Shown: positions 34,685 through 64,000, counted from the first letter of the stretch. The stretch is DNA of 64,000 nucleotides from Diplonema japonicum (GCA_964019335.1 OZ025660.1:496001-560000); one strand, 5' to 3'. A program made the numbers and translations. Notes: a model not told the origin generated them from the letters alone.

Positions 34685-36135
34685 CCTCCAGGAGCCTGGT
34701 TCCCTTTCCAGAGAATGGACATCAGAACAGATCTTGGTTTGCGAATGGAATGGTTGTACACACCGCACCCATCTTGCCCCTTTGCCTACCTCCCCACCCC
34801 TCCATTGGTCCTCGTGATGGGAATATGAATGGATCAGTTTCCTTCTGTCATTTATGTGTTAAAGGGGAATCAGGAGACTGTGTCTTCATAGAATGGACCA
34901 ATGTTCTTTAACTACGGTGTCATCATGCTTCGGTGTTGCTGCTGTCGGGCACAACACAGATCCTTGAGACAGCAAAGAAAAGCAACTGTGCTTTGGGTGT
35001 TGTTGCTGTTTTCTTTTCAGAAAGGGTTTGTGCAGAGCACCTATCCATCAAACACCTATCATCTGTGATGACAAGGTCAGAGACTCTAGTCTTTTGTGCT
35101 TTGATCATCATTCACAGCGTTGGTGTGTCCCCTTCGACACGGGTCATCACCTCAAAAGACGAAAAAGGCAAAGCAAAGAGAACAAAAAATGGTCTCACGC
35201 TGATAAAGCTCCCATTCCAAGCATGAGGTGCCCAACGGGTGGTATGTACAGCGTTGCGTTGCTGCTTTCTTTGTTCTCACATCCCTCTTCTCGCATTGCT
35301 TCACAACCATCACCCTATTAAGAGGGAACTGGCTCGCTTATAAGCTTGCTGAAAGCTTCCTTCCTTCCTTCCTTCCTTCCTTCTTTCCTTGCTCTCCCAT
35401 GTCTCTCTTCACTTCTCCTCTCGCATCAGGACTGGAGGATGGTATCTTTACTGTGAAAGGCCTTCCGTGGCACCCGTGCTGCTTCTTCTTGTGTCCTCAT
35501 CTCCCGCCCACTTTCACCCTGCAGCACAAACAGAGTGTGACTGCTGCAACGACAGCGGAGGGCGGTGGAAGAGCCAGGATGGAATAAAATTGTGTCGAAT
35601 GAAGAGCCTTGGCTACAAATGGAAAGAAGTCAGAAGTCCTTGTTTGTAAATCATGAATTGAAAGATCAGAAGCAAGACTGGCATGTCGTGAAAGGGTCGT
35701 TGTCATCATCTTGGTTTGTGCAAAAAAGAAAAAGGAAACCTTTTCCTCAAAAAGGCAAAAGAAAACCGCTGGAGTCTCACGCTGATAAAGCTCCCATTCC
35801 AAGCATGAGGTGCCCAACGGGTGGTATGTACAGCGTTGCGTTGTGTTGCGTTGCCTGTCCCTCCACTCCAAGGAGAAGGGTGTGCATCAGACGATGCCGT
35901 CTCACTGGTGTCTGCTCAGCACCAACAGAAGCCTGCCGGTTCATAAAATATAGGATCTAAGTGGTGAATCATCATCTGCTCATTCCTTGGAGGGTATCTA
36001 TTTATTTTATTTCCCCCTAATTCTCTCAGTTTATTTTTCAAAAAAAAACACAGTTCTATCGCAGACCAGCCAACCCTGAAGGGCCGACCGACTAGGATCG
36101 GAGGTGACAGAATGGGTGTGTTGAGTTCTCATCAC
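34685..36135. repeat. Segmental duplication, near-identical to 46623-48073
   Basis: Constant offset of 11938; identical ORF-track entries in both copies. Confidence 0.93.
35416..35480 (-). ncRNA. Single-hairpin box-AGA guide, predicted LSU target ACUGGC-UU-GUGGCA
   Basis: Pocket arms TGCCAC and CCAGT are complementary to the conserved peptidyl-transferase-region sequence GATAACTGGCTTGTGGCAG; basal stem GCACGGG/CCTGATGC; AGA box. Confidence 0.75.
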
Positions 36136-36192
36136 AGAGTTCCCATTCGTAGGAAAGTCCCCGCTTCTCCCAAAACAGAAAAAAAGGAGACA

Positions 36193-36279
36193 TCAGAACA
36201 GATCTTGGTTTGCGAATGGAATGGTTGTACACACTGTACCCAAAGGTGCTTCATACGCCAGGTAAAGTGGTGTCATCAT
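36193..36279 (-). ncRNA. Box C/D snoRNA CD-E; LSU guide
   Basis: TGATGA...AACCAAGATCTG-TT-CTGA; complementary to LSU GCAGATCTTGGT. Full copy also at 60250-60336; half copies at 34722, 41440, 46660 and 63320. Confidence 0.78.
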
Positions 36280-36681
36280 CTTGCCCACGACAGGACCTAC
36301 CCCACCCCAGCAAGCACAGAGTTGTGAATAAACAAGAATAACAAGAAAATACGGTATGTGGCAGGACGCCTCAAAAAAAAGAAAAGAGGAACACCCAAAG
36401 GTGGAATGCCTTTGCTAAAGAAGCAGGTCGAGTTAAAAGGTCTCTCTCTTTCATTTCTCCCATTTTTCTTTTGTCGTTTCATTTGTTTCTCATCTTAAGT
36501 TGTCACACCTACAGACATCATCTCCAGGTACAACGAACTTACTCAAATTGAAGAAGAAAGCAAAAACAACAACGAAAACGAAAAATAAATGGAGGAACAG
36601 AAAAAGAAAAACATCACTGCAACGGAGAAGTGAAAGGCCCACTGTTTTAAAAAATAAAAAAAGGGCGGGCACACAAATGAG

Positions 36682-36712
<31 letters not shown>

Positions 36713-37067
36713 AAAGCACAACCCCCTCAAAGAATGTGGAGTTATATCCACACCTGTTCTGCGGGGGTTCATGAAGTATAGCCCAGCTGTAGTAGGCTAG
36801 CTAGAATGTTGGGAAGAAAGTGTGGTGATCCTTCGGAGGGATGGGAACAGAGAGCAGTGGAGCTGCGGACCACTCTTTCTCATTGTGGTTCGTGGTGTCT
36901 TTCTTTCATTCTCTCCTTTTTTTTTCCCCCCTCTCTGTCCCCTCCTCATCCGGAGGATCGTTTGTTTTTTTTTCTTTTTTTTTTCTCTTTTTTTTCTTCT
37001 TTCTTTTTGTTCTCTCGTGGGAATTTTATTTTTATGCATTTTATCATAAAAACTACGGACTACTGTC

Positions 37068-37382
37068 TCACAGCTTCTTGGCAACCATGGATGTCACCTT
37101 CCCGTCGGAAACAGTGAAGGTCTGCCTCACCTTCAGGGTCACAAGGCCCAGGGCCACCTTTGCCTTCAGGGTGCGTGTGAAGGTGCCCTCAGGGGTCTCC
37201 ACCAGCTCCGTCTCCCCGTAGAAGTCAGGTGCATCATCGCTTGCCATCTGCTTCCTCAAAGCCCCCTTCCCCTTCACCTCCCACCGGGGGGTCTTGAAGT
37301 GCGCATCCTCCGCAACAAGGGCCAGCATCCCATCACGGTCCTTTGCCTTCATGCACTTTACGTACTGCTGCACAACGTCCAT
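37068..37382 (-). CDS. SnoaL/NTF2-like small protein (104 aa), copy 1
   Basis: MDVVQQYVKCMKAKDRDGMLALVAEDAHF...KGKGALR...FTVSDGKV: SnoaL-like pattern; intronless and GC-rich. Confidence 0.78.
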   Translation of the reverse strand: MDVVQQYVKCMKAKDRDGMLALVAEDAHFKTPRWEVKGKGALRKQMASDDAPDFYGETELVETPEGTFTRTLKAKVALGLVTLKVRQTFTVSDGKVTSMVAKKL

Positions 37383-37420
37383 TATTTTGTGTGTTTGGTG
37401 GTTTGTTTTTACCTGCTGTT

Positions 37421-37455
<35 letters not shown>

Positions 37456-38267
37456 AGAGAAACAAAAAAAGAAGAACAAAGAAGAAGAAAAAAAAAGGGA
37501 ACCAAGATAAGAAGAGGAAGACAAGAAGAAGAAGAAGAAAAACGATCGATATGTCGCCAAGAGCGCCAGCTCCACCTAAGTGGGCTGCCAAACGGAGTGT
37601 AATAAAAACATGCAGCAACTATCAAGAAAACAGCTTTCAAAGGAGAAACCACCACTGCGAGTGCCTGCAATGGATGCAGTGGTAGGGCTGCTGCTGCTGA
37701 CAAAAAAAAGAAAAGGAGAGAGAAAAAAAGAGCAAGGAAAAAAAAAAAAAAAAAGAAAATAAAAAAATGAAGGTTGCAAAAACGTAGCAAGCCTGCAAAA
37801 TTGAACAAAAAAGAAGGGGAAGGGAGGGATAACATGTTTGTATATTGGTGGGAGCAAGAATGATCTTTGTGCATGACACCAGGAGCTATGAAAACGTGTG
37901 AGCTGTTTCCTTCTATTCCTTTTTAAGGGGTGCGGTAAGAATAGGTACCGCCGGGTCAAGTAAGGTGCTCTATCTCTTTGTTGTTCGTTTCAACTTTCCG
38001 GCAACCGTGCTTGGCTGCTTTCCAAGTTAAAAAACAAACCTTATAAATCGTCGCGATGGCAAAGGGCTTGCTCGGCTGTTTTTCTAAAGTTTCAAACAAA
38101 CCTTCTTAAAAATCGTCGCGATTGCAAAGGGAACGAAAAGAGAAAGAACAAGAAGAAGAATAAGGGAATAAAAAAAAGGGGGGAAATGGCTTTATTAAAA
38201 AAAAGTCGTTGGTGGTGATTGTTTCATCCCTCGCCCTCTCGTGGCTGGCTGGTGTGGCTTTCCCTTC

Positions 38268-39728
38268 TCAGTTCATGAAAGGAGCCCAGTAGCCTCCATT
38301 ATTGTTGGGGCTCGCTTCAGGGTGGAAGTTGTTGGCCTGCGGGGGGACGTAGTTGGTGTCCACCAAGGTCTGGATGCGGTCCTTGATCTCCCTGACCTTA
38401 TCGGGGTACTGGCCCACAAGGTTCACCCTCTCATTGGGGTCGTCGATGAGGTTGAAGAGGTACTCGTCTGCGACGGAGTCGGGTGCTTCCCAGGTGTACG
38501 GGTTGATGGTCCAGTAGCCGTCGTAGTAGGTGGACTGGTTGAGGTTCGGGTTCACGATGAGCTTCCAGTCCCCGCTGATGAAGGCTGTGTAGTTCTTCCC
38601 GTTGTCGAAGATGTTGATGGGGACCTCCGTGCGCAGCAGCGGGCCTTCCTCCATAATCGCCCTCCACTGCGACACCCCGTCGGAGGTCTGCTCGGGGAGG
38701 GACGCTGCTTCCAACAGGGTGGGGAGCCAGTCCACAGCGTGGATGAGCCCCCTGAAGCCGGTGCCCCTCTTGGTCGAGGGGATCACCCTGTCCCCGCCCT
38801 GCAGGAACCCCACCGCCCGCACCCCGCCGTCGAAGAGCGTGAACTTCCCCGCACGCAGGGGCCAGTTCGACCCTGCAGACCCCACCTCCCCCGACGAGGT
38901 TCCCGTCATCGACACGTCCACCTCCCCCCCGTTGTCCGAGGTGAAGATCATGAGCGTGTTCTCCCAGAGCCCGAGGTCCCTGTAGAGGGCGACGAGCTCC
39001 CCGATCGCCCTGTCCACCTCGTACATCATGTTGCAGTAGACCTTCCTCTTTGCGGGCTGCACCCCGTCGCACTCTGTCGTCGGGGTAGGAGGGTTTTCCA
39101 GCGGGATGTGCATGTTCTGGTGCGAGAAGTACAGGAAGCTCGGGCTGTTCTTCTCCGCGATCTGGTGCAGGTATGTGTTCGCCTCCCTCATGAAGGCCGT
39201 CATCGAGTACTCCCCGACCGTGGCGTTCCTCTCCTTGTTCAGCCAGAAGTCGAACCCGCTCAACCTTCCCATCTCCACCGTGTGGTTGTAGTAGTCCCCC
39301 ATCGCCTGCATGTAGCCCAAGTATTGCTGGAAGCCACGCTCCGTCGGGGTCTGCGCCCATTTCGCGTAGCCGCAGTGCCACTTCCCGATCATGTAGGTGT
39401 CGTACCCGGACGACACAAGGTACTCCGGGAGCGTCTTGTCCGTTGCCGGGATCCCGGCCGAGCTCCCGGGCAGGACCGTTTCCAGGTGCTGCATCCCCGT
39501 GTGGAAGGGATACCTCCCCGTCATGAAGGCTGACCTCGTCGGGCTGCACACAGGTTGCATGTAGTACCTCTCAAGCTTGATTCCATTGTTGGCCAACTCG
39601 TTGATGTTGGGAGACGGCAGGTTGCCCCCTTGGTACCCCACGTCTGCCCACCCCAGGTCGTCCACCACCAGCATCAGGATGTGCGGTTGTGCACTCAAGG
39701 CTGCAGCGAAGCAGAGAACGGACAGCAT
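38268..39728 (-). CDS. Secreted arylsulfatase B-like sulfatase (family S1)
   Basis: Signal peptide, DDLGWAD, formylglycine motif CSPTR, GKWH, FTSDNGG, GSNWPLRAGK; intronless. Confidence 0.95.
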   Translation of the reverse strand: MLSVLCFAAALSAQPHILMLVVDDLGWADVGYQGGNLPSPNINELANNGIKLERYYMQPVCSPTRSAFMTGRYPFHTGMQHLETVLPGSSAGIPATDKTLPEYLVSSGYDTYMIGKWHCGYAKWAQTPTERGFQQYLGYMQAMGDYYNHTVEMGRLSGFDFWLNKERNATVGEYSMTAFMREANTYLHQIAEKNSPSFLYFSHQNMHIPLENPPTPTTECDGVQPAKRKVYCNMMYEVDRAIGELVALYRDLGLWENTLMIFTSDNGGEVDVSMTGTSSGEVGSAGSNWPLRAGKFTLFDGGVRAVGFLQGGDRVIPSTKRGTGFRGLIHAVDWLPTLLEAASLPEQTSDGVSQWRAIMEEGPLLRTEVPINIFDNGKNYTAFISGDWKLIVNPNLNQSTYYDGYWTINPYTWEAPDSVADEYLFNLIDDPNERVNLVGQYPDKVREIKDRIQTLVDTNYVPPQANNFHPEASPNNNGGYWAPFMN

Positions 39729-39739
39729 TGTGTGTGGTT

Positions 39740-39771
<32 letters not shown>

Positions 39772-40277
39772 CCACTTCCTAAACCTGTGTGACTGATTGG
39801 GGGCTATAACTTATTTTCAACAATATTAAAAAACAAGAATTGAAAGGAAAATATTTTTTTTATTTTTATTCCTCAACGAAACAGCGGGAGCCACCATTTG
39901 GTGAGCGTCAAATACGCAATATCACCAGCTGTCCATTGGGAAAATAAAAAAAAAGTTTTAAAGAAAAGGAACAACCGAGAGGGAATGGAGGGAGGGAAAA
40001 GTGTAACCAGACATGTGTCATGGTTACAAGGTATAATAATAGGGGAGGAGGGAGGGAAGCTCTCGGCCCACCACAGGTGGGCGAGGGGAATCATGTTAAC
40101 TAAATGCTTTTTTTTTTCTTCGGACAAAAAAGACACGATGCACAAGTCACAGAAGAAGAAGAATAAGAAGAGGAAGCCTAATAAGTTGGTATTGTTGCTG
40201 TCTTGTCCCAATTAAGAGAGTATGGCGTTGGTCCTCTTCTTGTTGTTGTTGTTGTTGTTGCTGTTCTTGTTGCTGCT

Positions 40278-41327
40278 TCAGCCAATCTTGTAACCCAGGT
40301 GGTTGCTGGTGAGGCACTGGGCGTACCACCTGCTCTGCTTGTAGCAAGAGGCCCCGCCGGAGCAGCAGGTGGGGGCGTGAAGGCAGCTTCCCCACTTCGG
40401 GATCGCCGTGCGGCAACCAGAGGAAGGAGGGGGAACAGGAACGGGGACAGGTGGAACAGGAACAGGAGGAGTGGGAGGGGTGGGGACAGGTGGTGTGTTC
40501 CCGTTCCCCGCTGCAGGGATGCACTGGGCATACCACTGGCTCTGCCTGTCGCACACCGCCCCTTGCGTGCAGCAGTGCATCGCGCTCGTGCAAGCCCCCC
40601 ACATGGGAATCGTCCTCGAGCACCCTGTGGTGGGGGGAACAGGGACAGGGGGAACGGGAACGGGGGGAACAGGAACAGGAGGGACAGGAACAGGAGGAGT
40701 GGGAGGGGTGGGAACAGGAGGAACAGGGTTCCCGCCGCCACCACCACCACCACCACCACCTCCACTGAAGTCCAAGTCAACAGCGTTGTAGAAGCTTGCG
40801 GCGGTGTCACCGACATCCCAGATGGCGAGGACAACGTGGTAGCCCGACTTGGAGGGGAGGGTGCAGGAGTGGGTCGTCACCATCGGGGGCTTCACCATCC
40901 CGCCCGCCGCGGAGCAGAAGGGAGCATCCTCGAAGCTGCCCCTCCCGAGGGGAGCGTTCTGGTTCCACCCATCCTTCGTGATGTAGTACCTCCAGTCCAG
41001 GGTCACGTGGTTCGCCGTGAACTGCCAGGTGAAGTCGGTCCTGCCCCCGCTCGCTGCCGTCTTCGCCCACCTGCTCGAAGACTGCTCGTTCAGAGGGGCC
41101 CAGGTCGCGCTCCCCGCCGCCGCCAGCTGCCCGTCCGGAGGACCGCTCGCTGGGTACCGGTCCGGTCCCTCCACACTCTGCGGCTCGTACTGCACCCCTC
41201 CGCACCCGCTGTTTGTCTTCAGCTTGCACGCGTAGTTCCGAGAAGGCGGGCTCATCACGTAGCCGTGTCCCTCAACCCGCACCACTGCTGCCGCTGCCAG
41301 CAGCATCGGAAGTCCCAGGCGCTTCAT
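40278..41327 (-). CDS. AA10 lytic polysaccharide monooxygenase (GbpA/CBP21-like) with Gly/Pro linker and two CBM1 modules, copy 1
   Basis: Signal peptide then His1 (HGYV); QYEPQSVEG, FTANHVT.DW.YYITK, WDVGDTAASFYN; two WGxC...C..QSxWYAQC modules. Confidence 0.93.
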   Translation of the reverse strand: MKRLGLPMLLAAAAVVRVEGHGYVMSPPSRNYACKLKTNSGCGGVQYEPQSVEGPDRYPASGPPDGQLAAAGSATWAPLNEQSSSRWAKTAASGGRTDFTWQFTANHVTLDWRYYITKDGWNQNAPLGRGSFEDAPFCSAAGGMVKPPMVTTHSCTLPSKSGYHVVLAIWDVGDTAASFYNAVDLDFSGGGGGGGGGGGNPVPPVPTPPTPPVPVPPVPVPPVPVPPVPVPPTTGCSRTIPMWGACTSAMHCCTQGAVCDRQSQWYAQCIPAAGNGNTPPVPTPPTPPVPVPPVPVPVPPPSSGCRTAIPKWGSCLHAPTCCSGGASCYKQSRWYAQCLTSNHLGYKIG

Positions 41328-41429
41328 TTCTCTTCTTCTTTTTTTTTTTTTTTTTTTTTTTTTTTGTTGTGTGGAAACTGTGGAGTGAAAATAGAGACAG
41401 AGTAGCGAGCCCCCTCTTCCAACAAGAGG

Positions 41430-42930
41430 ATGAATGGATCAAAGGTGCTTCATACACCAGGTAAAGTGGTGTCATCATCTTGCCCCTTTGCCTACCCCAT
41501 TGGCCCTCGTGATGGGAATATGAATGGATCAGTTTCCTTCTGTCATTTATGTGTTAAAGGGGAATCAGGAGACTGTGTCTTCATAGAATGGACCAATGTT
41601 CTTTAACTACGGTGTCATCATCTTGCTCTGCACTCCCGCTTGCATCTCCTCTCGCATCAGGACTGGAGGATGGTATCTTTACTGCGAAAGGCCTTCCGTG
41701 GCACCCGTGCTGCCTCTCGAGCTTCCTTTTCTTGTGTTGGTGTATTCTTGAACCAATATTATTCCGTATCCCTTACAGCAAAGGGCAAGGAGGGTTGCAG
41801 GTACGTCCTTGTTGGTGTAGGGTGCTTTCACCTCATTCGCTCTTCTCTTCATCTTTATTTCCCCATCTCCTGCCCGCTCAGACTCTAGTCTTTGGTGTTT
41901 TGATCATCATTCACAGCGTTGGTGTGTCCCCTCTTCGGGAATTCGGGAGAAAAGGTTCCTCATCTCCCGCCCACTTTCACCCTGCAGCACAAACAGAGTG
42001 TGACTGCTGCAACGACAGCGGAGGGCGGTGGAAGAGCCAGGATGGAATAAAGTTGTGTCGAATGAAGAGCCTTGGCTACAAATGGAAAGAAGTCAGAAGT
42101 CCTTGTTTGTAAATCATGAATTGAAAGATCAGAAGCAAGACTGGCATGTCGTGAAAGGGTCGTTGTCATCATCTTGGTTTGTGCAAAAAAGAAAAAGGAA
42201 ACCTTTTCCTCAAAAAGGCAAAAGAAAACCGCTGGAGTCTCACGCTGATAAAGCTCCCATTCCAAGCATGAGGTGCCCAACGGGTGGTATGTACAGCGTT
42301 GCGTTGCCTGTCCCTCCACTCCAAGGAGAAGGGTCGGAGACATCAGAAGAGGTGTAGTTTGTTGATAATGTTCCATTTCACGCCCCCCCAGGGGGAGGTC
42401 ATCTAACCGCAATATCGTGTCTCATCATCTGTCTGCTGAAACCAAACAAATCAAAAAGAAACAAAAAGAAAAGCAGCGTTCTCACCAGCACATCGAACCA
42501 CATGCACCATGATGAGCTGCTGCGGTATTGCAATGCGGGTTTCCTACTGCAACGCTCCTTGGCACTCTCATCTCCCGCCCACTTTCACCCTGCAGCACAA
42601 ACAGAGTGTGACTGCTGCAACGACAGCGGAGGGCGGTGGAAGAGCCAGGATGGAATGAAATTGTGTCGAATGAAGAGCCTGGGCTACAAATGGGAAGAAG
42701 TCAGAAGTCCTTGTTTGTAAATCATGAATTGAAAGATCAGAAGCAAGACTGGCATGTCGTGAAAGGGTCGTTGTCATCATCTTTAAAGAAATTGTGTAGG
42801 AGTTTTTCTCTCTTTTATCTCAGTTTATTTTTCAAAAAAACACAGTTCTATCGCAGACCAGCCGACCCTGAAGGGCCGACCGACTAGGATCGGAGGTGAC
42901 AGAATGGGTGTGTTGAGTTCTCATCATGCA
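41430..42930 (-). ncRNA. snoRNA array 3
   Basis: C/D: 41529-41621, 42093-42172, 42343-42428, 42701-42780, 42820-42927. AGA hairpins: 41647-41711, 41743-41805, 41960-42029, 42235-42301, 42477-42541, 42568-42637. Confidence 0.83.
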
Positions 42931-43824: not shown

Positions 43825-46461
43825 CTAAATGTCAAAGTACACGGTGGAACTGGGCGGTGTCATCTTAACCTCCTGAGAAGGCACAGGAGCTTTCTCCAAG
43901 TCACTCAACAGCATTTCCCGAGGAGCGGTCGTGGTCATGGTAGAGGTTCTCTTCTTGTTGTACACTGTGAGGGCGATGGCGGAACCAATGCACAGGGCAC
44001 CCAAACCACCTGCGAGATACAGCCACGGCATCGAGAAGGAGGAAGAGGAAGAGGAGGAGGAGGAGCCAGACTCGTCATCAGGTTGCGGGGCAGGAACGCT
44101 GACCTTTGCGACAGGCTTCACAACAAGGGAACCCTCGTCGCCGTCCACCAAAGGTCCCTTCCCCTCAGCTGCCTCCTTCACCGCCTCTTCCACTTCCGCC
44201 TCGATCTTGTCCGCATCTTTCCCCTCAATACGGTACTCCACGAACACACCAGTGTCGCTGTCATCCTCCACCTGCTGGACTCCGGCACCTCTGTAACGAC
44301 GCCTCTCCTCGTTCAGGTAGTCCATGTTCCATGAACGGTCCACTTCCACCGCATAGTTCCTCCTCTCCCTCGGTGTCGGACGCCTGTTCCCCGCCTTCAA
44401 CACACCAACAGCAGTCACCACCAACCAGTCGGGCCTCGACCTCAGCCACCTTGAAGCCTTCATCATAGACATCCTGAACTTCCTCAGGAAGTCCCTCGGC
44501 CTCTGCATCACATAGTTCCTGTTACCTCTAAACCTCAAGCACTTCTCCATCTCAGGAGAAGGTGTGGGGTTTGGTGTCGACATTCTTGGAGCTGCGGTGT
44601 TCGGGGCTGAGGTCTCTCTCTGCTCGCTGCCAGGGGATGAAGTCACTTTCTGTTCACCACCAGGGGATGAGGTTTCTTTCTGCTCGCCACCAGGGGATGA
44701 AGTCACTTTCTGCTCGCCACCAGGGGACGAAGTCTCCTTCTGTTCGCCATTAGGGCTTGGAGTCTCACCGTTGCCCATTTCACCACCAGGGGACGGAGTC
44801 TCGCCGTTGCCTTCTTCACCACCAGGGGATGGAGTCCTGCCGTTGCCCTCCTCACCACCAGGGGACGGAGTCTCGCCGTTGCCTTCTTCACCACCAGGAG
44901 ATGGAGTCCTACCGCCGTTGCCTTCCTCACCGCCAGGAGATGGAGTCTCGCCGTTGCCTTCCTCACCACCAGGGGACGGACCTTCTTCACCGCCAGGAGA
45001 TGGACCCTCTTCGGTACCTTCTTCAGTTCCCTCCTCGGTGCCTTCTTCTGTTCCCTCTTCACGGTCTTTTGCGGCTCCCTGTTCACCTTTGTTGCCATTG
45101 TTGCCCTCAGGGTTGTTGTTGCCCCCTTCTTCACCGTTGCCGGTGCCCCCTTCTTCACCGCCAGTTGGTGGAGGCATACCGTTGCCACCTTCTTCACCGC
45201 CAGTGGGTGGAGGCATACCGTTGCCACCCTCCTCACCATCAGGGGATGGAGTCCTGCCGTTACCACCCTCTTCACCGCCAGGGGATGGAGTCCTACCGTT
45301 GCCACTCTCCTCACCGCCAGGAGATGGAGTCCTTCCGTTGCCACCTTCTTCACCACCAGGGGATGGAGTCCTACCGTTACCACCCTCTTCACTGCCAGGG
45401 GATGGAGTCCTACCGTTGCCACCCTCTTCACCGCCAGGAGATGGAGTCCTTCCGTTGCCACCTTCTTCACCACCAGGGGATGGAGTCCTACCGTTACCAC
45501 CCTCTTCACCGCCAGGGGATGGAGTCCTGCCGTTGCCACCCTCCTCACCGCCAGGAGATGGAGTCCTACCGTTGCCACCCTCTTCACCGCCAGGAGATGG
45601 GGTCCTACCGTTGCCACCCTCCTCACCGCCGGGAGATGGAGTCCTACCGTTCCCTTCCTCACCACCAGGGGATGGAGTCCTACCGTTGCCTTCTTCACCA
45701 CCAGGGGATGGAGTCTTACCGTTGCCCTCTTCACCACCAGGGGAATCCGTGTTCTGCTCACCGTTCGGACTGGGGGTGTTCTGCTGACCATTAGGACTGG
45801 GGGTGTTCTGTTGACCATTAGGACTCGGGGTGTTCTGTTGACCATTAGGACTGGGAGTGTTCTGCTGGCCGTTAGGACTGGGGGTGTTCTGCTGACCATT
45901 AGGACTCGGGGTGTTCTGTTGACCATTAGGGCTTGGAGTGTTCTGCTGACCATTAGGACTCGGAGTGTTTTGTTGACCATTAGGACTGGGGGTGTTCTGT
46001 TGACCATTAGGGCTTGGAGTAGCAGGGGCCCGAGTAGCAGGGGCTCGGGTAGCAGGGGCTGAAGTAGCGGGAGCAGAAGTGTCAGGGGCTCGAGTAGCAG
46101 GGGCCCGAGTAGCGGGAGCAGAAGTGTCAGGGGCCCGAGTATCAGGAGGCGAAGTAGCAGGGGCCCGAGTATCAGGGATTGCTGTGTCAGGGGACAAACT
46201 CTCACCCGGTTTACACTTCCTCGGGGGGTAGGTCTTCTTCCCGTAGCTCTTCTTCCCGTAGTAGGTCTTCTTCCCGTAGTACGTCTTCTTCCCGTAACTC
46301 TTTTTCCCATAATAGCTCTTTCCGTAGTACTTGCTACTGTAGTGGTTCCCGTTGCCGTAGCCATAGTTGTATCCCCCCACTTGGCTGCCATAGTAGTGTG
46401 CGCTGGCTGGTGCCACCATCGAGGCGGCACACAGCACTAGAAGCAAGCTCCTCGACCTCAT
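43825..46461 (-). CDS. Type I membrane mucin-like repetitive surface protein (878 aa), copy 2
   Basis: Signal peptide, Tyr/Gly/Lys-rich head, APATR, NTPSPNGQQ and GEEGGNGRTPSPG tandem repeats, short globular segment, TM WLYLAGGLGALCIGSAIALTVY, cytoplasmic tail; intronless. Confidence 0.88.
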   Translation of the reverse strand: MRSRSLLLVLCAASMVAPASAHYYGSQVGGYNYGYGNGNHYSSKYYGKSYYGKKSYGKKTYYGKKTYYGKKSYGKKTYPPRKCKPGESLSPDTAIPDTRAPATSPPDTRAPDTSAPATRAPATRAPDTSAPATSAPATRAPATRAPATPSPNGQQNTPSPNGQQNTPSPNGQQNTPSPNGQQNTPSPNGQQNTPSPNGQQNTPSPNGQQNTPSPNGQQNTPSPNGQQNTPSPNGEQNTDSPGGEEGNGKTPSPGGEEGNGRTPSPGGEEGNGRTPSPGGEEGGNGRTPSPGGEEGGNGRTPSPGGEEGGNGRTPSPGGEEGGNGRTPSPGGEEGGNGRTPSPGGEEGGNGRTPSPGSEEGGNGRTPSPGGEEGGNGRTPSPGGEESGNGRTPSPGGEEGGNGRTPSPDGEEGGNGMPPPTGGEEGGNGMPPPTGGEEGGTGNGEEGGNNNPEGNNGNKGEQGAAKDREEGTEEGTEEGTEEGTEEGPSPGGEEGPSPGGEEGNGETPSPGGEEGNGGRTPSPGGEEGNGETPSPGGEEGNGRTPSPGGEEGNGETPSPGGEMGNGETPSPNGEQKETSSPGGEQKVTSSPGGEQKETSSPGGEQKVTSSPGSEQRETSAPNTAAPRMSTPNPTPSPEMEKCLRFRGNRNYVMQRPRDFLRKFRMSMMKASRWLRSRPDWLVVTAVGVLKAGNRRPTPRERRNYAVEVDRSWNMDYLNEERRRYRGAGVQQVEDDSDTGVFVEYRIEGKDADKIEAEVEEAVKEAAEGKGPLVDGDEGSLVVKPVAKVSVPAPQPDDESGSSSSSSSSSFSMPWLYLAGGLGALCIGSAIALTVYNKKRTSTMTTTAPREMLLSDLEKAPVPSQEVKMTPPSSTVYFDI

Positions 46462-56513: not shown

Positions 56514-56858
56514 TTACTGCTTGACGGTAAGGTGCTTGATGATCTTGCCGTCGGCGTTGAAGGTGTAGGTCTGCTTCAGGTTGGCCTTGACCATCATCTT
56601 GGAGACGACCATGGTGCGGGTGGCGACGAGCTCGCCCTCAGCCACGAAGTCCGTCTTGGACTTCAGGGTGGGAAGGCTCTTGTCCTGGTTGCCCCAGAAT
56701 GCCACCACGTTCGCCTTCCCGTTGTGTGTCTCGGTCGACATCATGGTCGGCACGGTCCACTCGACGTCGTCAGCAAGGAACTCCCCAGCCTCCTCGTTCT
56801 TCTTCGCCACGCGAAGCTCAACGAACTGGCTTGCGATCGCAACAACGTCAACACCCAT
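56514..56858 (-). CDS. SnoaL/NTF2-like small protein (114 aa), divergent paralog
   Basis: FLADDVEW...HNGKANV...YTFNADGKI; intronless and GC-rich. Confidence 0.78.
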   Translation of the reverse strand: MGVDVVAIASQFVELRVAKKNEEAGEFLADDVEWTVPTMMSTETHNGKANVVAFWGNQDKSLPTLKSKTDFVAEGELVATRTMVVSKMMVKANLKQTYTFNADGKIIKHLTVKQ

Positions 56859-56974
56859 TTTTATTGGTTTTGGTTTTTAGAAAGTAGATAATACTGTAAT
56901 GTGGTGTGGTGGAGTGTTTAGGGAAAATGCTCCAGATATTTTTAATCATATCCCATTTAGAGACACCAGGCAGG

Positions 56975-57174: not shown

Positions 57175-57211
<37 letters not shown>

Positions 57212-58345
57212 CTGTTTTCTGTTTTCTTTTCAGAAAGGGTTTGTGCAGAGCACCTATCCATCAAACACCTCTCATCTGTGATGACAAGGTCAGAGACTCT
57301 AGTCTTTTGTGCTTTGATCATCATTCACAGCGTTGGTGTGTCCCCTTCGACACGGGTCATCACTTCAAAAGACGAAAAAGACAACAAAATCAGTTCCTTT
57401 CAAAGCAAAGAGAACAAAAAATGGTCTCACGCTGATAAAGCTCCCATTCCAAGCATGAGGTGCCCAACGGGTGGTATGTACAGCGTTGCGTTGCTGCTTT
57501 CTTTGTTCTCACATTCCTCTTCTCGCACTGCTTCACAACCATCACCCTATTAAGAGGGAACTGGCTCGCTTATAAGCTTGCTGAATGAAAGCTCTCTTCA
57601 CTTCTCCTCTCGCATCAGGACTGGAGGATGGTATCTTTACTGCGAAAGGCCTTCCGTGCTGCCTCTCGAGTTTCCTTTTCTTTCGTTGGTGTATTCTTGA
57701 ACCAATATTATTCCGTATCCCTTACAGCAAAGGGCAAGGAGGGTTGCAGGTACTTCCTTGTTGGTGTAGGGCATTCTTCTTCTTTGTGTCCTCATCTCCC
57801 GCCCACTTTCACCCTGCAGCATCCATTTCACGCCCCCCCAGGGCTATGCTGGCAGGAAACGTGGAAACGTTTCCGTTTCCGTTTCCGTTTCCATACTTTT
57901 CAAAATTCTTATGGAAACGCGGTTCCTTCTTAAGGAAACATAAGGAAACGTTTCCGTTTCCGTATCCCTTTTTTTCAAAAAATGCATGGAAACGCGTTTC
58001 CATGCCAGCATAGCCCCAGGGGGAGGTCATCTAACCGCAATATCGTGTCTCATCAGCTGTCTGCTGAAACCAAACAAACCAAAAAGAAACAAAAATAAAA
58101 GCAGGGTTCTCACCAGCACATCGAACCACATGCACTGATGAGCTGCTGCGGTATTGCAATGCGGATTTCCGGGATAGGAGACATGCTGGGGATCTTGTAC
58201 CAGATAAAGGGAACCTGTGCAAGGTACGAGGCACCTCACAGGAGGGTTGCCGGTACTCTGTTCTATTGTTTCTCTTCCTTCTCTCGCACCAGTATTATCC
58301 CGCAACCCTTACCACAAAGGGCACTGGTCCTTGATGGTGCTGTGC
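56975..58345 (-). ncRNA. snoRNA array 5 (reshuffled order, with fragments and a MITE insertion)
   Basis: AGA hairpins at ~56977-57044, 57072-57140, 57422-57488, 57518-57582, 57692-57755, 58105-58167, 58190-58257, 58279-58341; C/D at 57230-57363. Confidence 0.8.
57841..58016. mobile_element. 176-bp MITE inserted in a copy of snoRNA CD-D
   Basis: TIRs GGGCTATGCTGGCA(T)GGAAACG / CGTTTCCATGCCAGCATAGCCC with internal GGAAAC/GTTTCC repeats. The empty site CCCCCCCAGGGGG is visible at 3009-3021 and ~42383-42395. TSD length is ambiguous (CA up to CCCCAGGG). Confidence 0.85.
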
Positions 58346-58959: not shown

Positions 58960-59259
58960 TCAGCTGGTGGTCACTGTCTCATGAACGTGAGTCTTGAACA
59001 CGCCAGTCACTTCGCCGTCTCTTGTTAAGACTGTCTTTTCGTCTATTGTGTGGCTCTTCTCCTTGTCGCCACTGAGCGTCTTCTCTACTGATTCGCAATG
59101 AACGTGGCCTTGCTTGGTATCTTTGTCGGTGACTACCGTGCGAGTTGTCTTGTTCCCGTCGATGTCCGTCACCTCATGGATGTGTGCCCCGTCTTCTACT
59201 TTGTCATCCACGGTGTGTCTCGTGTGCGCTGCAACTGCCTGCTTGTCAGCGGAAGACAT
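58960..59259 (-). CDS. Small 99-aa Thr/His/Asp-rich hypothetical protein
   Basis: Clean ATG-to-stop ORF with strong codon bias, preceded by a CAG acceptor and A-rich leader. Confidence 0.65.
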   Translation of the reverse strand: MSSADKQAVAAHTRHTVDDKVEDGAHIHEVTDIDGNKTTRTVVTDKDTKQGHVHCESVEKTLSGDKEKSHTIDEKTVLTRDGEVTGVFKTHVHETVTTS

Positions 59260-59399
59260 TATTTGTATAGTTTTCTTCTTTTTTTCCTTCTTTCCCGAGA
59301 AAACTGAAGAATAATTTGCGGTGTTTCTTGTGTTAAAGGGGAATCATGATGGTCCCTCCCTCTTCGAGATGGAGCTCACCATTGGGAGCGCTAGCTTGT

Positions 59400-60340
59400 A
59401 AGCTTGCTGCTGAAAGCTTCCTTCCTTCCTTCCTTCCTTCTTTCCTTGCTCTCCCATGTCTCTCTTCACTTCTCCTCTCGCATCAGGACTGGAGGATGGT
59501 ATCTTTACTGTGAAAGGCCTTCCGTGGCACCCGTGCTGCTTCTTCTTGTGTCCTCATCTCCCGCCCACTTTCACCCTGCAGCACAAACAGAGTGTGACTG
59601 CTGCAACGACAGCGGAGGGCGGTGGAAGAGCCAGGATGGAATAAAATTGTGTCGAATGAAGAGCCTTGGCTACAAATGGAAAGAAGTCAGAAGTCCTTGT
59701 TTGTAAATCATGAATTGAAAGATCAGAAGCAAGACTGGCATGTCGTGAAAGGGTCGTTGTCATCATCTTGGTTTGTGCAAAAAAGAAAAAGGAAACCTTT
59801 TCCTCAAAAAGGCAAAAGAAAACCGCTGGAGTCTCACGCTGATAAAGCTCCCATTCCAAGCATGAGGTGCCCAACGGGTGGTATGTACAGCGTTGCGTTG
59901 TGTTGCGTTGCCTGTCCCTCCACTCCAAGGAGAAGGGTGTGCATCAGACGATGCCGTCTCACTGGTGTCTGCTCAGCACCAACAGAAGCCTGCCGGTTCA
60001 TAAAATATAGGATCTAAGTGGTGAATCATCATCTGCTCATTCCTTGGAGGGTATCTATTTATTTTATTTCCCCCTAATTCTCTCAGTTTATTTTTCAAAA
60101 AAAAACACAGTTCTATCGCAGACCAGCCAACCCTGAAGGGCCGACCGACTAGGATCGGAGGTGACAGAATGGGTGTGTTGAGTTCTCATCACAGAGTTCC
60201 CATTCGTAGGAAAGTCCCCGCTTCTCCCAAAACAGAAAAAAAGGAGACATCAGAACAGATCTTGGTTTGCGAATGGAATGGTTGTACACACTGTACCCAA
60301 AGGTGCTTCATACGCCAGGTAAAGTGGTGTCATCATCTTG
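59400..60340 (-). ncRNA. snoRNA array 6 (copy of the right part of array 2)
   Basis: Same modules as 35345-36290. Confidence 0.83.
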
Positions 60341-60736
60341 CCCACGACAGGACCTACCCCACCCCAGCAAGCACAGAGTTGTGAATAAACAAGAATAACA
60401 AGAAAATACGGTATGTGGCAGGACGCCTCAAAAAAAAGAAAAGAGGAACACCCAAAGGTGGAATGCCTTTGCTAAAGAAGCAGGTCGAGTTAAAAGGTCT
60501 CTCTCTTTCATTTCTCCCATTTTTCTTTTGTCGTTTCATTTGTTTCTCATCTTAAGTTGTCACACCTACAGACATCATCTCCAGGTACAACGAACTTACT
60601 CAAATTGAAGAAGAAAGCAAAAACAACAACGAAAACGAAAAATAAATGGAGGAACAGAAAAAGAAAAACATCACTGCAACGGAGAAGTGAAAGGCCCACT
60701 GTTTTAAAAAATAAAAAAAGGGCGGGCACACAAATG

Positions 60737-60775
<39 letters not shown>

Positions 60776-61129
60776 AAAGCACAACCCCCTCAAAGAATGT
60801 GGAGTTATATCCACACCTGTTCTGCGGGGGTTCATGAAGTATAGCCCAGCTGTAGTAGGCTAGCTAGAATGTTGGGAAGAAAGTGTGGTGATCCTTCGGA
60901 GGGATGGGAACAGAGAGCAGTGGAGCTGCGGACCACTCTTTCTCATTGTGGTTCGTGGTGTCTTCTTTCATTCTCTCCTTTTTTTTTTCCCCCTCTCTGT
61001 CCCCTCCTCATCCGGAGGATCGTTTGTTTTTTTTTCTTTTTTTTTTCTCTTTTTTTTCTTCTTTCTTTTTGTTCTCTCGTGGGAATTTTATTTTTATGCA
61101 TTTTATCATAAAAACTACGGACTACTGTC

Positions 61130-61444
61130 TCACAGCTTCTTGGCAACCATGGATGTCACCTTCCCGTCGGAAACAGTGAAGGTCTGCCTCACCTTCAGGG
61201 TCACAAGGCCCAGGGCCACCTTTGCCTTCAGGGTGCGTGTGAAGGTGCCCTCGGGGGTCTCCACCAGCTCCGTCTCCCCGTAGAAGTCAGGTGCATCATC
61301 GCTTGCCATCTGCTTCCTCAAAGCCCCCTTCCCCTTCACCTCCCACCGGGGGGTCTTGAAGTGCGCATCCTCCGCAACAAGGGCCAGCATCCCATCACGG
61401 TCCTTTGCCTTCATGCACTTTACGTACTGCTGCACAACGTCCAT
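61130..61444 (-). CDS. SnoaL/NTF2-like small protein, copy 2
   Basis: Protein identical to 37068..37382, with a different upstream leader. Confidence 0.78.
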   Translation of the reverse strand: MDVVQQYVKCMKAKDRDGMLALVAEDAHFKTPRWEVKGKGALRKQMASDDAPDFYGETELVETPEGTFTRTLKAKVALGLVTLKVRQTFTVSDGKVTSMVAKKL

Positions 61445-62143
61445 TATTTTGTGTGTTTGGTGTTTCACTTCCTAAACCTGTGTGACTGATGGGAGGCTAT
61501 GGCGTATTTCAAACAACAAAAGTAAAAAAACGAGAATTGAAAGGAAAATAAAAATGCGGGAAAAAAAACTCAAAGTACAGGACAAGCCCCCCGCTAGAGG
61601 GCCGCCCTATAAAAAAAAAACTCGAAAAGATTTCAGTGTGCATGGGGTGCTCACTGTTCAAAAAAAAACCTTTTTATCTTCAAAAGAAGAATGTAAAAAA
61701 AAGTATTTTTTTTGGTTTTTTTTTATTTTTTTTATTTATTCCTCAACGAAACAGCGGGAGTCACCATTTGGTGAGCGTCAAATACGCAATATCACCAGCT
61801 GTCCATTGGGAAAATAAAAAAAAGTTAAAGAAAAGGAACAACCGAGAGGGAAAGGAGGGGAGGAAAAGTGTAACCAGACATGTGTCATGGTTACAAGGTA
61901 TAATAATAGGGGAGGAGGGAGGGAAGCTCTAGGCCACCACAGGTGGGCGAGGGGAATCATGTTAACTAAATGCTTTTTTTTTTCTTCGGACAAAAAAGAC
62001 ACGATGCACAAGTCACAGAAGAAGAAGAATAAGAAGAGGAAGCCTAATAAGTTGGTATTGTTGCTGTCTTGTCCCAATTAAGAGAGTATGGCGTTGGTCC
62101 TCTTCTTGTTGTTGTTGTTGTTGTTGCTGTTCTTGTTGCTGCT

Positions 62144-63208
62144 TCAGCCAATCTTGTAACCCAGGTGGTTGCTGGTGAGGCACTGGGCGTACCACCTGCT
62201 CTGCTTGTAGCAAGAGGCCCCGCCGGAGCAGCAGGTGGGGGCGTGAAGGCAGCTTCCCCACTTCGGGATCGCCGTGCGGCAACCAGAGGAAGGAGGGGGA
62301 ACAGGAACGGGGACAGGTGGAACAGGAACAGGAGGAGTGGGAGGGGTGGGGACAGGTGGTGTGTTCCCGTTCCCCGCTGCAGGGATGCACTGGGCATACC
62401 ACTGGCTCTGCCTGTCGCACACCGCCCCTTGCGTGCAGCAGTGCATCGCGCTCGTGCAAGCCCCCCACATGGGAATCGTCCTCGAGCACCCTGTGGTGGG
62501 GGGAACAGGGACAGGGGGAACGGGAACGGGGGGAACAGGAACAGGAGGGACAGGAACAGGAGGAGTGGGAGGGGTGGGAACAGGGGGAACCGGAACAGGA
62601 GGAACAGGGTTCCCGCCGCCACCACCACCACCACCACCACCTCCACTGAAGTCCAAGTCAACAGCGTTGTAGAAGCTTGCGGCGGTGTCACCGACATCCC
62701 AGATGGCGAGGACAACGTGGTAGCCCGACTTGGAGGGGAGGGTGCAGGAGTGGGTCGTCACCATCGGGGGCTTCACCATCCCGCCCGCCGCGGAGCAGAA
62801 GGGAGCATCCTCGAAGCTGCCCCTCCCGAGGGGAGCGTTCTGGTTCCACCCATCCTTCGTGATGTAGTACCTCCAGTCCAGGGTCACGTGGTTCGCCGTG
62901 AACTGCCAGGTGAAGTCGGTCCTGCCCCCGCTCGCTGCCGTCTTCGCCCACCTGCTCGAAGACTGCTCGTTCAGAGGGGCCCAGGTCGCGCTCCCCGCCG
63001 CCGCCAGCTGCCCGTCCGGAGGACCGCTCGCTGGGTACCGGTCCGGTCCCTCCACACTCTGCGGCTCGTACTGCACCCCTCCGCACCCGCTGTTTGTCTT
63101 CAGCTTGCACGCGTAGTTCCGAGAAGGCGGGCTCATCACGTAGCCGTGTCCCTCAACCCGCACCACTGCTGCCGCTGCCAGCAGCATCGGAAGTCCCAGG
63201 CGCTTCAT
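62144..63208 (-). CDS. AA10 LPMO-CBM1x2, copy 2
   Basis: Identical to copy 1 except for one extra 5-aa Pro/Val linker unit. Confidence 0.93.
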   Translation of the reverse strand: MKRLGLPMLLAAAAVVRVEGHGYVMSPPSRNYACKLKTNSGCGGVQYEPQSVEGPDRYPASGPPDGQLAAAGSATWAPLNEQSSSRWAKTAASGGRTDFTWQFTANHVTLDWRYYITKDGWNQNAPLGRGSFEDAPFCSAAGGMVKPPMVTTHSCTLPSKSGYHVVLAIWDVGDTAASFYNAVDLDFSGGGGGGGGGGGNPVPPVPVPPVPTPPTPPVPVPPVPVPPVPVPPVPVPPTTGCSRTIPMWGACTSAMHCCTQGAVCDRQSQWYAQCIPAAGNGNTPPVPTPPTPPVPVPPVPVPVPPPSSGCRTAIPKWGSCLHAPTCCSGGASCYKQSRWYAQCLTSNHLGYKIG

Positions 63209-63309
63209 TTCTCTTCTTCTTTTTTTTTTTTTTTTTTTTTTTTTTGTTGTGTGGAAACTGTGGAGTGAAAATAGAGACAGAGTAGCGAGCCCCCTCTTCC
63301 AACAAGAGG

Positions 63310-64000
63310 ATGAATGGATCAAAGGTGCTTCATACACCAGGTAAAGTGGTGTCATCATCTTGCCCCTTTGCCTACCCCATTGGCCCTCGTGATGGGAATA
63401 TGAATGGATCAGTTTCCTTCTGTCATTTATGTGTTAAAGGGGAATCAGGAGACTGTGTCTTCATAGAATGGACCAATGTTCTTTAACTACGGTGTCATCA
63501 TGTGTTTCCCCCCCCCCCCTCCTCGCAATTGGGCGAGTCACCTCTTCTCGCATTGCTTCACAACCATCACCCTATTAAGAGGGAACTGGCTCGCTTATAA
63601 GCTTGCTGAAAGCGTCTTTCCTTTCCCATCTCTCTCTCTTCACTTCTCCTCTCGCGGACTGGAGGTATCTTTACTGCGAAAGGCCTTCCGTGGTACCCGT
63701 GCTGCCTCTCGAGTTTCCTTTTCTTTCGTTGGTGTATTCTTGAACCAATATTATTCCGTATCCCTTACAGCAAAGGGCAAGGAGGGTTGCAGGTACTTTC
63801 TTGTTTCTTCCTTTTTTCTTTGTTCCCCCGCGTATCTCGCAGGTTTTTGACCCTCACTTGAACCAGCAACATGGGTTCGCAAGGAACACGAAACACTGCT
63901 GCGCTCGTGTGTTGTGTGTGCCCACATGTCTCGCACCCCTCCAACGCCTCTTTCATGTATGAAGAACGCGAAGTGGTGTTAATTAAGGGTGCTCTCCTTT
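63310..64000 (-). ncRNA. snoRNA array 7 (reaches the window edge)
   Basis: C/D at 63409-63501; AGA hairpins at ~63544-63607, 63734-63796, 63832-63904, 63927-63993. Confidence 0.8.

Follow-up and report, generated by a model that had tools for sequence, protein, structure and literature searches.

Mosaic snoRNA clusters and co-amplified protein genes along a Diplonema japonicum contig

In Trypanosoma brucei, VSG conversion is a duplicative transfer with an upstream anchor of 70-bp repeats, a variable downstream end and a single orientation, and in mammalian snoRNA retrogenes (snoRTs) the unit of homology is the mature snoRNA. New guides in Euglena gracilis arise from duplicated or chimeric copies. 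One Euglena study reportedly found multicopy U3 genes, we know of no co-amplified protein-coding cargo described for the E. gracilis arrays, and Moore and Russell are said to have reported in 2012 that this species carries tandem snoRNA arrays with massive local duplication of modification-guide genes.

Among trypanosomatids (T. brucei, L. major, Leptomonas), snoRNA clusters are promoterless, transcribed polycistronically by Pol II and then processed (PMC3273796), and both diplonemids and trypanosomes transcribe their genes together with snoRNA clusters as polycistronic units (PMC10161547, PMC3273796). Dispersed non-coding direct repeats of the SIDER type recombine in Leishmania and alter gene copy number, and the resulting amplicons are for the most part extrachromosomal, circular or linear, and span the entire interval from one repeat to the other (PMC4028189). 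The main text of the one published diplonemid genome paper holds no text match for snoRNA clusters (PMC10161547). We here provide a detailed map of 16 snoRNA families in a diplonemid, centred on a window of 64,000 nt from Diplonema japonicum (GCA_964019335.1 OZ025660.1:496001-560000) and extended over the surrounding region of its contig, C13.

snoRNA clusters and neighbouring protein genes

The seven arrays that the sequence-only reading had marked in the window are genuine snoRNA clusters of the minus strand (Table 1). C-box motifs number 54 on the minus strand of the window vs 10 on the plus strand. The three strings previously seen at array junctions are snoRNA boxes in reverse complement, namely tcatcatc for the C box GATGATGA, tcag for the D box CTGA and tctcgc for GCGAGA, the AGA box of H/ACA-like RNAs. 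Scored as box C/D RNAs, i.e. with a C box (RUGAUGA) near the 5' end, a D box (CUGA) near the 3' end and 60-110 nt between them, families A, B, D, E, F and H possess both boxes, E with clear D' and C' boxes in addition, while family C combines a good C box with an uncertain D box. Exact rRNA-antisense matches of at least 12 nt abut CTGA in 25 of 99 cases on the minus strand vs 1 of 48 on the plus strand. With a guide defined as at least 10 nt of rRNA antisense ending beside a D or D' box, family D has a predicted box-adjacent guide of 14 nt to SSU position 1237 and family B one of 12 nt to LSU position 1503 (LSU 5' half); for A, E, F and H, antisense to the SSU and to LSU positions 1-1651 does not exceed shuffled controls.

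The remaining modules resemble the single-hairpin AGA-box H/ACA-like type known from trypanosomes (PMC3273796), which we scored as a single 60-75-nt hairpin that contains an internal loop and precedes an AGA located ~3 nt before the 3' end. This fold is seen in families b, c, d, e, f and h, and a, g and i, where the hairpin fit is less clean, each terminate in GCGAGA or CAAGA. Judged by sequence, the arrays are ordinary euglenozoan snoRNA clusters composed of predicted box C/D guides and predicted single-hairpin AGA-box pseudouridylation guides.

Along ~300-330 kb of C13 the 16 module families are present in 287 copies (5-33 per family), all 287 in a single orientation, and grouped into nine islands that alternate with single-copy gene blocks. 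As in trypanosomatid clusters, C/D and H/ACA-like genes are mixed, reiterated and close-packed on one strand, at a density of ~12 snoRNA genes to 1.5 kb, exclusively on the minus strand. The same strand carries 173 of the 228 retained non-overlapping ORFs of the region, and a single one of 2439 self-matches is inverted. Same-strand genes extend over at least 355 kb with the snoRNA clusters in their intergenic gaps, an arrangement that is probably one polycistronic transcription unit, from whose long transcript the snoRNAs are presumably excised. Two families, E and b, were checked across the genome contigs and found only on C13, at 390-690 kb.

Table 1. Arrays and protein genes of the window (positions from its first letter; array modules in transcription order)
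Feature	Position	Strand	Remarks
Mucin-like surface protein gene	1..1408	-	5' part only, runs off window start; one of 6 C13 copies
Array 1	1547-3060	-	H b f g d b h e D b' E' F
Single-copy block	3500..34600	-	ordinary eukaryotic genes (ankyrin, RNA ligase/kinase, M48 peptidase, K+ channel, others)
Array 2	34718-36285	-	B C D b E c a d b F A B(3' fragment)
SnoaL_2-domain gene	37068..37874	-	268 aa, intact copy
Sulfatase gene	38268..39728	-	486 aa; four C13 copies, protein 100% identical
AA10 (LPMO_10) lytic polysaccharide monooxygenase gene	40278..41327	-	349 aa; A27 tract in leader
Array 3	41440-42926	-	C / E c H b E c F' i a A B(5' fragment)
Mucin-like type I membrane protein gene	43825..46461	-	878 aa
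Array 4	46656-48072	-	C D b E c a d b F A B(3' fragment)
Small SnoaL_2-domain gene (fam16)	56514..56858	-	114 aa
Array 5	56981-58337	-	h e H' H' c' i a' d b F f a; several truncated modules
99-aa ORF	58960..59259	-	fragment, probably a relic; 42-53% identity to fam13 proteins of the 592-661 kb islands
Array 6	59476-60342	-	B C D b E c a
Truncated SnoaL gene	61130..61465	-	residues 158-268 only; deletion derivative of the 37068-37874 gene
Second LPMO_10 gene	62144..63358	-	block 98.5% identical to 39852-41621
Array 7	63320-63997+	-	...f g i a' d A B(5' fragment); runs past window end

Protein genes are amplified together with the arrays, and the nine islands hold 6 mucin, 4 sulfatase and 5 SnoaL copies as well as 12 of LPMO, a chitin-oxidising enzyme of bacterial type. 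Within the window the duplications of mucin, LPMO and SnoaL noted earlier are real, and a third, truncated SnoaL copy joins them; over the surrounding 360 kb the counts are far higher. Both LPMOs match PF03067 in full length (profile positions 1-183 of 183, E=5e-45); their relatives are first diplonemid transcripts and then bacterial GbpA, the nearest outside diplonemids being gammaproteobacterial GbpA with 50-60% identity over the catalytic domain. The 878-aa mucin has a signal peptide, tandem repeats rich in P/T/S/G/E and a C-terminal TM helix, and the small SnoaL family (fam16) has additional copies at 440.4, 442.7 and 458.6 kb of C13. All 12 LPMO loci and all 4 sulfatase copies are uninterrupted ORFs, while SnoaL is broken in 3 of 5 copies; the 59.4-63.5 kb copy has lost the sulfatase by a 2.4-kb deletion (37404-39852 vs 61465-61724). 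The block at 3.5-34.5 kb is single-copy, as had been described, without any repeat coverage, and the majority of its genes are likewise long single ORFs.

Ends of the copied blocks

Module maps bear out that module order differs from array to array, and the proposed location of junctions at shared boxes also proves correct, with homology between copies ending -1 to +7 nt from a C box and +1 to +10 nt from a D box. Long stretches are nevertheless shared, such as 34624-36135 in array 2 vs 46553-48073 in array 4 (98.7% identity) and 35332-37404 vs 59390-61465 (99%); the core common to arrays 2, 4 and 6 is too alike for a crossover to be mapped.

The two ends of the blocks differ in kind. Eleven block pairs are young (at least 98% identity), the longest spanning ~5.5 kb, and in 7 of these both copies have their upstream end no more than 12 nt from a snoRNA 5' edge (null 0.089, P=1e-5); a snoRNA 3' edge coincides with the downstream end in one of the 11, which is not significant. 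For blocks of at least 95% identity, the unique upstream ends number 70, of which 29 coincide with snoRNA 5' edges vs 6.5-9.6 expected, with module edges taken from the same self-comparison and C-box positions yielding the same picture. A boundary that recurs, the snoRNA A 5' edge before LPMO, accounts for most of the enrichment, and the events are thus not fully independent.

Downstream, the ends are non-homologous and lie inside module d (twice, with the block shared by array 6 ending 23 nt into the module), 23 nt past the SnoaL stop and in the mucin leader, and others are found inside modules, in 3' flanks or in leaders. The B fragment of array 3 (41440-41484) is joined to the LPMO leader via a 2-nt microhomology. 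A unit running A-LPMO-sulfatase-SnoaL-B-C and onward is present at five sites with 98-100% identity; most pairings share homology from the C box of snoRNA A onward, and the downstream truncation point differs in every copy. In the self-comparison of C13 no single-copy block lying between islands is duplicated, and the other islands hold no relics of unique genes. Duplications free of arrays also exist in the region, namely fam2 (415-421 kb) and a pair of 700 nt (360.7/670.7 kb). A PHI-type recombination test within the LPMO cassette gave p=0.014 for 11 copies and 0.94 for 9 copies, and the search for an 'empty site' revealing an insertion was negative.

Reciprocal unequal crossing-over between dispersed arrays is rejected, because no unique block lying between arrays has been duplicated or has left relics elsewhere, the largest copied block being 5.5 kb. 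It further needs homology at both junctions, while snoRNA edges mark 7 of 11 ends upstream and only 1 of 11 downstream.

Origin of the copies

Based on these observations we lean, if by a small margin over even chances, towards the explanation that short cassettes have been copied between otherwise ordinary polycistronic snoRNA clusters, and we infer both the mechanism and the direction of copying. Cassettes of ~1-6 kb would be transferred repeatedly from island to island, always keeping their orientation. Copying is probably homology-primed at a snoRNA: it would start by homologous pairing within the snoRNA gene at the upstream end of the cassette, extend downstream over a variable distance and finish by non-homologous or microhomology joining, a process resembling gene conversion or break-induced replication and unlike reciprocal unequal crossing-over. 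The protein genes would then be cargo, of which LPMO and sulfatase are kept and SnoaL decays. That the copied blocks often begin right at guide-RNA genes hints, short of proof, that these genes guide the copying.

A more specific version, which we put forward tentatively and consider doubtful, takes functional snoRNA genes as the homology anchors of directional copying, i.e. as a snoRNA-based analogue of VSG conversion. Following a break or the collapse of a fork, the affected array would invade the same snoRNA in a different array of its transcription unit, 1-6 kb would be copied downstream, and the end would be rejoined without homology. If so, whichever gene lies behind the anchoring snoRNA is moved and multiplied, the bacterial-type LPMO included.

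Besides the dominance of a single boundary, it speaks against cassette copying that pairs in islands VI and VII share more upstream context once module-sized indels are allowed; later modular turnover of the arrays could accordingly have trimmed homology back to a module edge.

Alternatively, segmental duplications may have carried arrays and genes alike, the arrays having no causal part and conserved snoRNAs amid spacers of fast turnover setting the block ends, which we regard as unlikely. As selection on snoRNAs predicts, 1593 of 2114 module pairs share neither flank and yet have a median identity of 95.8%. Spacer microsatellites and homopolymers break alignments, e.g. (CAA)n after the LPMO stop and poly-T after SnoaL, and the array-free tandem duplications nearby are also in line with such passive copying. 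However, pairs that are 98.7-99.4% identical over 1.5-5.5 kb lose homology abruptly, 0-3 nt from a C box, and since their divergence is only ~1%, decay is excluded as the cause. Decay also leaves the asymmetry between upstream and downstream ends unexplained, and the islands are flanked by unrelated unique blocks without relics of co-duplicated neighbours.

Still less probable is the full model of the sequence-only reading, by which guide recombination amplifies intronless acquired genes and the arrays, as landing pads, boost their transcription. It gains from the co-location of the arrays with multicopy genes for secreted or surface proteins, and from the kinship of LPMO to gammaproteobacterial GbpA, which fits an acquired gene. 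Its claim that guide recombination duplicates genes is supported in part, by the co-amplification and by the upstream ends at snoRNA edges, but not by the downstream junctions, which are non-homologous, or by the unique blocks, which are not doubled. The position of six of the seven arrays upstream of an intronless gene does not exceed chance (P=0.146) against the ~59% of genes that are intronless in the sole annotated diplonemid (PMC10161547), and a position upstream of some gene is inevitable here because all genes lie on the same strand. LPMO genes are also amplified beyond C13: at least 20 contigs together carry ~50 loci, including simple tandem arrays on C58 and C63, the two checked families E and b being absent there. 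Among the 100 listed of 109 matches to a generic two-snoRNA pattern, none lies within 10 kb of an LPMO outside C13, which is weak evidence since the pattern fails to pick up the C13 arrays too. The local boost of transcription that the model proposes has no support and is not expected, given the polycistronic co-transcription of genes and snoRNA clusters in diplonemids and trypanosomes (PMC10161547, PMC3273796). As to landing pads, decay of 3 of the 5 SnoaL copies fits hitch-hiking better than selected landing.

We consider it very improbable that snoRNP-protected fragments of polycistronic RNA were reverse-transcribed by LINE elements and re-inserted. Protection of the RNA 5' end by a snoRNP would entail a fixed upstream end and intronless cargo, and the upstream ends are indeed fixed at snoRNA 5' edges with variable downstream ends, the cargo genes being single ORFs. 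Against this, the eleven downstream junctions examined lack poly(A) tails and target-site duplications, all copies share one contig and one strand, unlike in retroposition, and they retain unprocessed snoRNAs and intergenic spacers. Retroposed snoRNA copies, recognizable by a poly(A) tail, a target-site duplication and random orientation and location, were likewise rejected. Repeats of 97-100% identity are difficult to assemble, but an assembly artefact or collapsed or expanded haplotypes can scarcely account for copies whose structure, unique neighbouring genes and sequence (84-99.9% identity) vary and which stand in order along one contig of 807 kb.

If priming at snoRNAs is real, cassette copying would offer a concrete route to a higher dose of useful genes in a genome that lacks gene-by-gene transcriptional control; equally, growth in snoRNA dosage would drag neighbouring genes along. 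If it is not, the region is still a clear case of birth-and-death evolution involving acquired CAZyme genes in a polycistronic genome.

Comparison with known systems

The arrays on C13 share with those of E. gracilis the massive local duplication of guides, but are mosaic where the latter are plain tandem repeats. The likeness to VSG conversion lies in the variable downstream end, the duplicative transfer in a single orientation and the homologous upstream anchor, which on C13 would be a functional snoRNA gene, with no expression-site or antigenic role implied. With snoRTs they have the unit of homology in common, but the C13 copies lack poly(A) tails, target-site duplications and dispersal to other chromosomes or strands. 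Leishmania likewise offers dispersed direct repeats as recombination substrates in a polycistronic euglenozoan genome (PMC4028189); unlike there, the copies on C13 are chromosomal and at most 5.5 kb long, and the DNA between islands stays single-copy. As in trypanosomatid clusters (PMC3273796), C/D and AGA-box H/ACA-like genes are interspersed and reiterated. However, a trypanosomatid cluster is usually repeated whole at one locus (PMC3273796), whereas on C13 module order varies between arrays, which are scattered over ~330 kb among unrelated genes and have protein genes copied along with them.

Guide RNA genes and repeat islands on one strand

For context, positions 340001-700000 of C13 (contig OZ025660.1, which carries the window at 496001-560000) were analysed, the 360 kb being treated as a single sequence. 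Within the window, RTGATGA occurs 54 times on the minus strand versus 10 times on the plus strand, gathered into seven patches, and the patches, read on the minus strand, contain textbook box C/D units, running from GATGATGA through 60-100 nt to CTGA, some of them with D' and C' boxes too. The scan for these units was made with the strict terminal-stem requirement dropped, since most were missed with it. Runs of ATGATGA at window positions 24958-24967 and 55043-55046 are C-box-like but lie within coding sequence, and were rejected as false positives of the motif scan. The three boxes that the sequence-only reading saw shared between arrays correspond, in reverse complement, to the C box, the D box and GCGAGA; the GCGAGA forms the 3' end of single-hairpin AGA-box RNAs in the arrays.

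Clustering of module-sized self-matches yielded 16 snoRNA families, seven C/D (designated by capitals) and nine H/ACA-like (lower case), and mapping these back gave 287 module copies in the 360 kb, all in one orientation. With the SSU and the first 1651 nt of the LSU as rRNA targets, exact antisense matches of at least 12 nt are followed by CTGA within 3 nt in 25 of 99 cases on the minus strand versus 1 of 48 on the plus strand of the 360 kb, and these CTGA-abutting matches come from two families, D and B (see table). The nine H/ACA-like families are each predicted by folding to form a single hairpin that contains an internal loop and has AGA after it. An Rfam search with gathering and E-value thresholds returned no usable family for any array snoRNA. 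A copy of snoRNA C near position 1916 of C13 660001-670000 is without the CTGA present at the same place in other copies; either this copy is non-functional, or the CTGA seen elsewhere does not act as the D box of snoRNA C.

The region forms a single gene cluster, 355 kb or more in length: 173 of the 228 ORFs kept (non-overlapping, at least 100 aa) are on the minus strand, most plus-strand ORFs fall inside arrays, and a single one of 2439 self-matches in the 360 kb is inverted. Repeats are restricted to nine islands, with single-copy blocks of 6-45 kb between them. Certain module words recur among islands ('B C D b E c a d b F A', 'H b f g d b h e', 'a d A g H b f g i') in varying combinations, interleaved with copies of the LPMO (AA10 lytic polysaccharide monooxygenase), mucin, sulfatase and SnoaL genes and of smaller ORF families. 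Families E and b, the two tested against the whole genome, are found only in this stretch of C13. The locus is real and richly structured, and several initial observations hold: module order varies among its seven arrays, its duplicated genes are genuine, the 3.5-34.5 kb block is single-copy, and homology between copies stops a few nucleotides from boxes.

Islands, interleaved genes and guide targets of the C13 region, with LPMO tandem arrays of two other contigs
Feature	Location	Detail
Island I	C13, 387-398 kb	repeated DNA
Island II	C13, 440-458 kb	repeated DNA
Island III	C13, 465-474 kb	repeated DNA
Island IV	C13, 480-499 kb	repeated DNA
Island V	C13, 530-545 kb	repeated DNA
Island VI	C13, 552-562 kb	repeated DNA
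Island VII	C13, 592-612 kb	repeated DNA
Island VIII	C13, 655-669 kb	repeated DNA
Island IX	C13, 680-688 kb	repeated DNA
LPMO	C13 340001-700000; C13, 719 kb	11 copies; one copy
Mucin		6 copies interleaved with islands
Sulfatase		4 copies interleaved with islands
SnoaL		5 copies interleaved with islands
Family D guide	SSU position 1237	14 nt antisense
Family B guide	position 1503 of the LSU piece	12 nt antisense
LPMO tandem array	C58, 357-375 kb	two genes per 6732-nt unit, three repeats
LPMO tandem array	C63, 267-274 kb	regular

Upstream and downstream ends of the copied blocks

Chaining of self-matches of at least 95% identity gave 58 block pairs of at least 700 nt. With upstream defined by the direction of transcription, 29 of their 70 distinct upstream ends fall no more than 12 nt from a module edge versus 6.5-9.6 expected, an enrichment that leans on a single recurrent boundary, namely A in front of LPMO, while downstream ends show no enrichment at module edges (8 of 72). 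In a young set of 11 array-associated pairs, identity is 98.2-99.9%, so that sequence decay cannot account for abrupt ends; here, the upstream end coincides with a snoRNA 5' edge in both copies of seven pairs (null 0.089, P=1e-5), and the downstream end with a 3' edge in one. In pairs that are 98.7-99.4% identical over 1.5-5.5 kb, all similarity is gone 0-3 nt from the C box of snoRNA A, B or C, and the longest copied block measures approximately 5.5 kb. Five sites carry the unit 'A - LPMO - sulfatase - SnoaL - B - C ...' with 98-100% identity; homology starts at A in most pairings, and downstream truncation differs in extent between copies.

At the downstream ends, the junctions are of the ordinary illegitimate kind. 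Two share the identical position within module d, and one of these is a d/e deletion giving a hybrid hairpin; another lies 23 nt past the SnoaL stop beside unique DNA, and yet another 100 nt into a mucin leader beside a unique gene. At approximately 6030-6170 of C13 460001-470000, the 5' 30 nt of the H/ACA-like module d lead straight into the 3' half of module e, and the sister copy, at C13 443.5 kb, has intact d and e next to each other; deletions of this type could create new guides. SnoRNA B is also found split into two complementary fragments, with one and the same nucleotide as the breakpoint (window 41440-41484 and 34718-34771, also 46656-46709 and 63320-63364), 6.7 kb apart in island V. 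The 5' fragment (45%) runs directly into the LPMO leader, the 3' fragment (56%) keeps only 'ggcaagATG' of the 5' end, and both joins have 1-2 nt of microhomology.

Two misleading signals were discarded: raw HSP ends near the LPMO stop codon, which resemble junctions, are an artefact of a (CAA)n microsatellite, and the 'B-type' 5' leader (gcaag) of one A copy amounts to 5 nt, too short to claim a C-box chimera. A PHI-type recombination test on the LPMO cassettes gave an unstable result, and in the 800-nt core common to arrays 2, 4 and 6 of the window the copies are practically identical and SNPs place no crossover.

Proposed mode of copying

Based on the block structure, we propose that duplicative transfer of short tracts is the best fit. 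Copying would begin with homology at the upstream end, extend over a tract of variable length and be closed non-homologously at the downstream end, and we infer, short of demonstration, that the event type is gene conversion or break-induced replication. Some block pairs share further upstream context once module-sized indels are allowed, hence later modular turnover of the arrays could have made part of the end pattern. Reciprocal unequal crossing-over between arrays is unlikely, since the stretches separating the islands are never themselves duplicated, and translated searches of other islands turned up no relic of a unique gene. The same observations make large-block duplication followed by gene loss (fractionation) unlikely, and this model was rejected for the lack of such relics. 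Assembly error behind the islands is improbable as well, as the copies have distinct flanks and structural differences, all on one contig. Retroposition of snoRNP-capped precursor RNAs, for which a fixed upstream end is expected, is rejected, as the junctions are without poly(A) tails and every copy is on one contig and one strand.

The proposal that arrays serve as an amplification platform is supported in part and not established: the asymmetric junction signature, with upstream ends at snoRNA edges, speaks for it, whereas the downstream ends are illegitimate and inter-island DNA is never copied.

Cargo genes, transcription and known clusters

The platform had also been linked to acquired, intronless and secreted genes. 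The cargo is indeed of a surface or feeding kind: the LPMO is of the bacterial GbpA type, with protist transcriptome proteins as closest relatives, and the mucin is a TM-anchored repeat protein with a signal peptide. Specificity for such genes is, however, not supported. LPMO genes occupy approximately 50 loci on at least 20 contigs, and families E and b are absent where LPMO is amplified on other contigs, including the C58 and C63 arrays. Duplications without arrays exist in the same region, and three of the five SnoaL copies are disrupted, whether through deletion or through truncation (C13 480.7-481.5 kb and 602.4-603.2 kb, window 61130-61465), as expected of hitch-hikers, the adjoining sulfatase copies being 100% identical in protein. 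That six of seven arrays precede an intronless gene has no evidential value, as P(at least 6 of 7) is 0.146 at a baseline of approximately 59% intronless genes, the share in Diplonema papillatum (PMC10161547); moreover, since all genes share a strand, any array must have a gene downstream of it. In the single-copy block, too, long single ORFs make up most of the genes.

A generic two-snoRNA pattern matches 109 sites genome-wide versus 8 for a control. None of the 100 listed sites lies within 10 kb of an LPMO locus outside C13, which is weak evidence since the pattern misses the C13 arrays. Among the sites listed, identical-length C/D-C/D pairs repeat on one strand of C3 (345-376 kb), C23, C29, C60 and C64 with an irregular spacing of roughly 0.5-140 kb, in most cases above 2 kb, so that scattering of arrays along one strand is a genome-wide habit and not specific to C13.

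A 700-nt segment outside arrays, overlapping part of a 130-aa ORF, occurs twice with 98% identity (C13 360687-361377 and 670667-671366), 310 kb apart. Inside a snoRNA array, at positions 2010-2162 of C13 440001-450000, lies an LPMO fragment of 51 residues, 98% identical and with a stop, which is a relic of a deleted copy.

We note that the coding strand carries a run of 26-27 A (window 41339-41365 and 63220-63245). The run precedes the candidate LPMO start codons by a few dozen nt (approximately 115 or less) and follows a pyrimidine-rich ...cacAG resembling a trans-splice acceptor; it is an unusual poly(A) tract for a 5' leader.

The suggested boost of transcription by the arrays is not supported; diplonemids and trypanosomes transcribe their genes and snoRNA clusters together in long units (PMC10161547, PMC3273796). 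Trypanosomes have guide RNAs of the single-hairpin AGA type (PMC3273796), and the nine AGA-ending hairpin families described here are of that same type. The AGA-box guides, the gene cluster running in a single direction and the protist transcriptome proteins nearest to the LPMO all agree with a diplonemid. In conclusion, the layout is a new version of the known euglenozoan snoRNA cluster.
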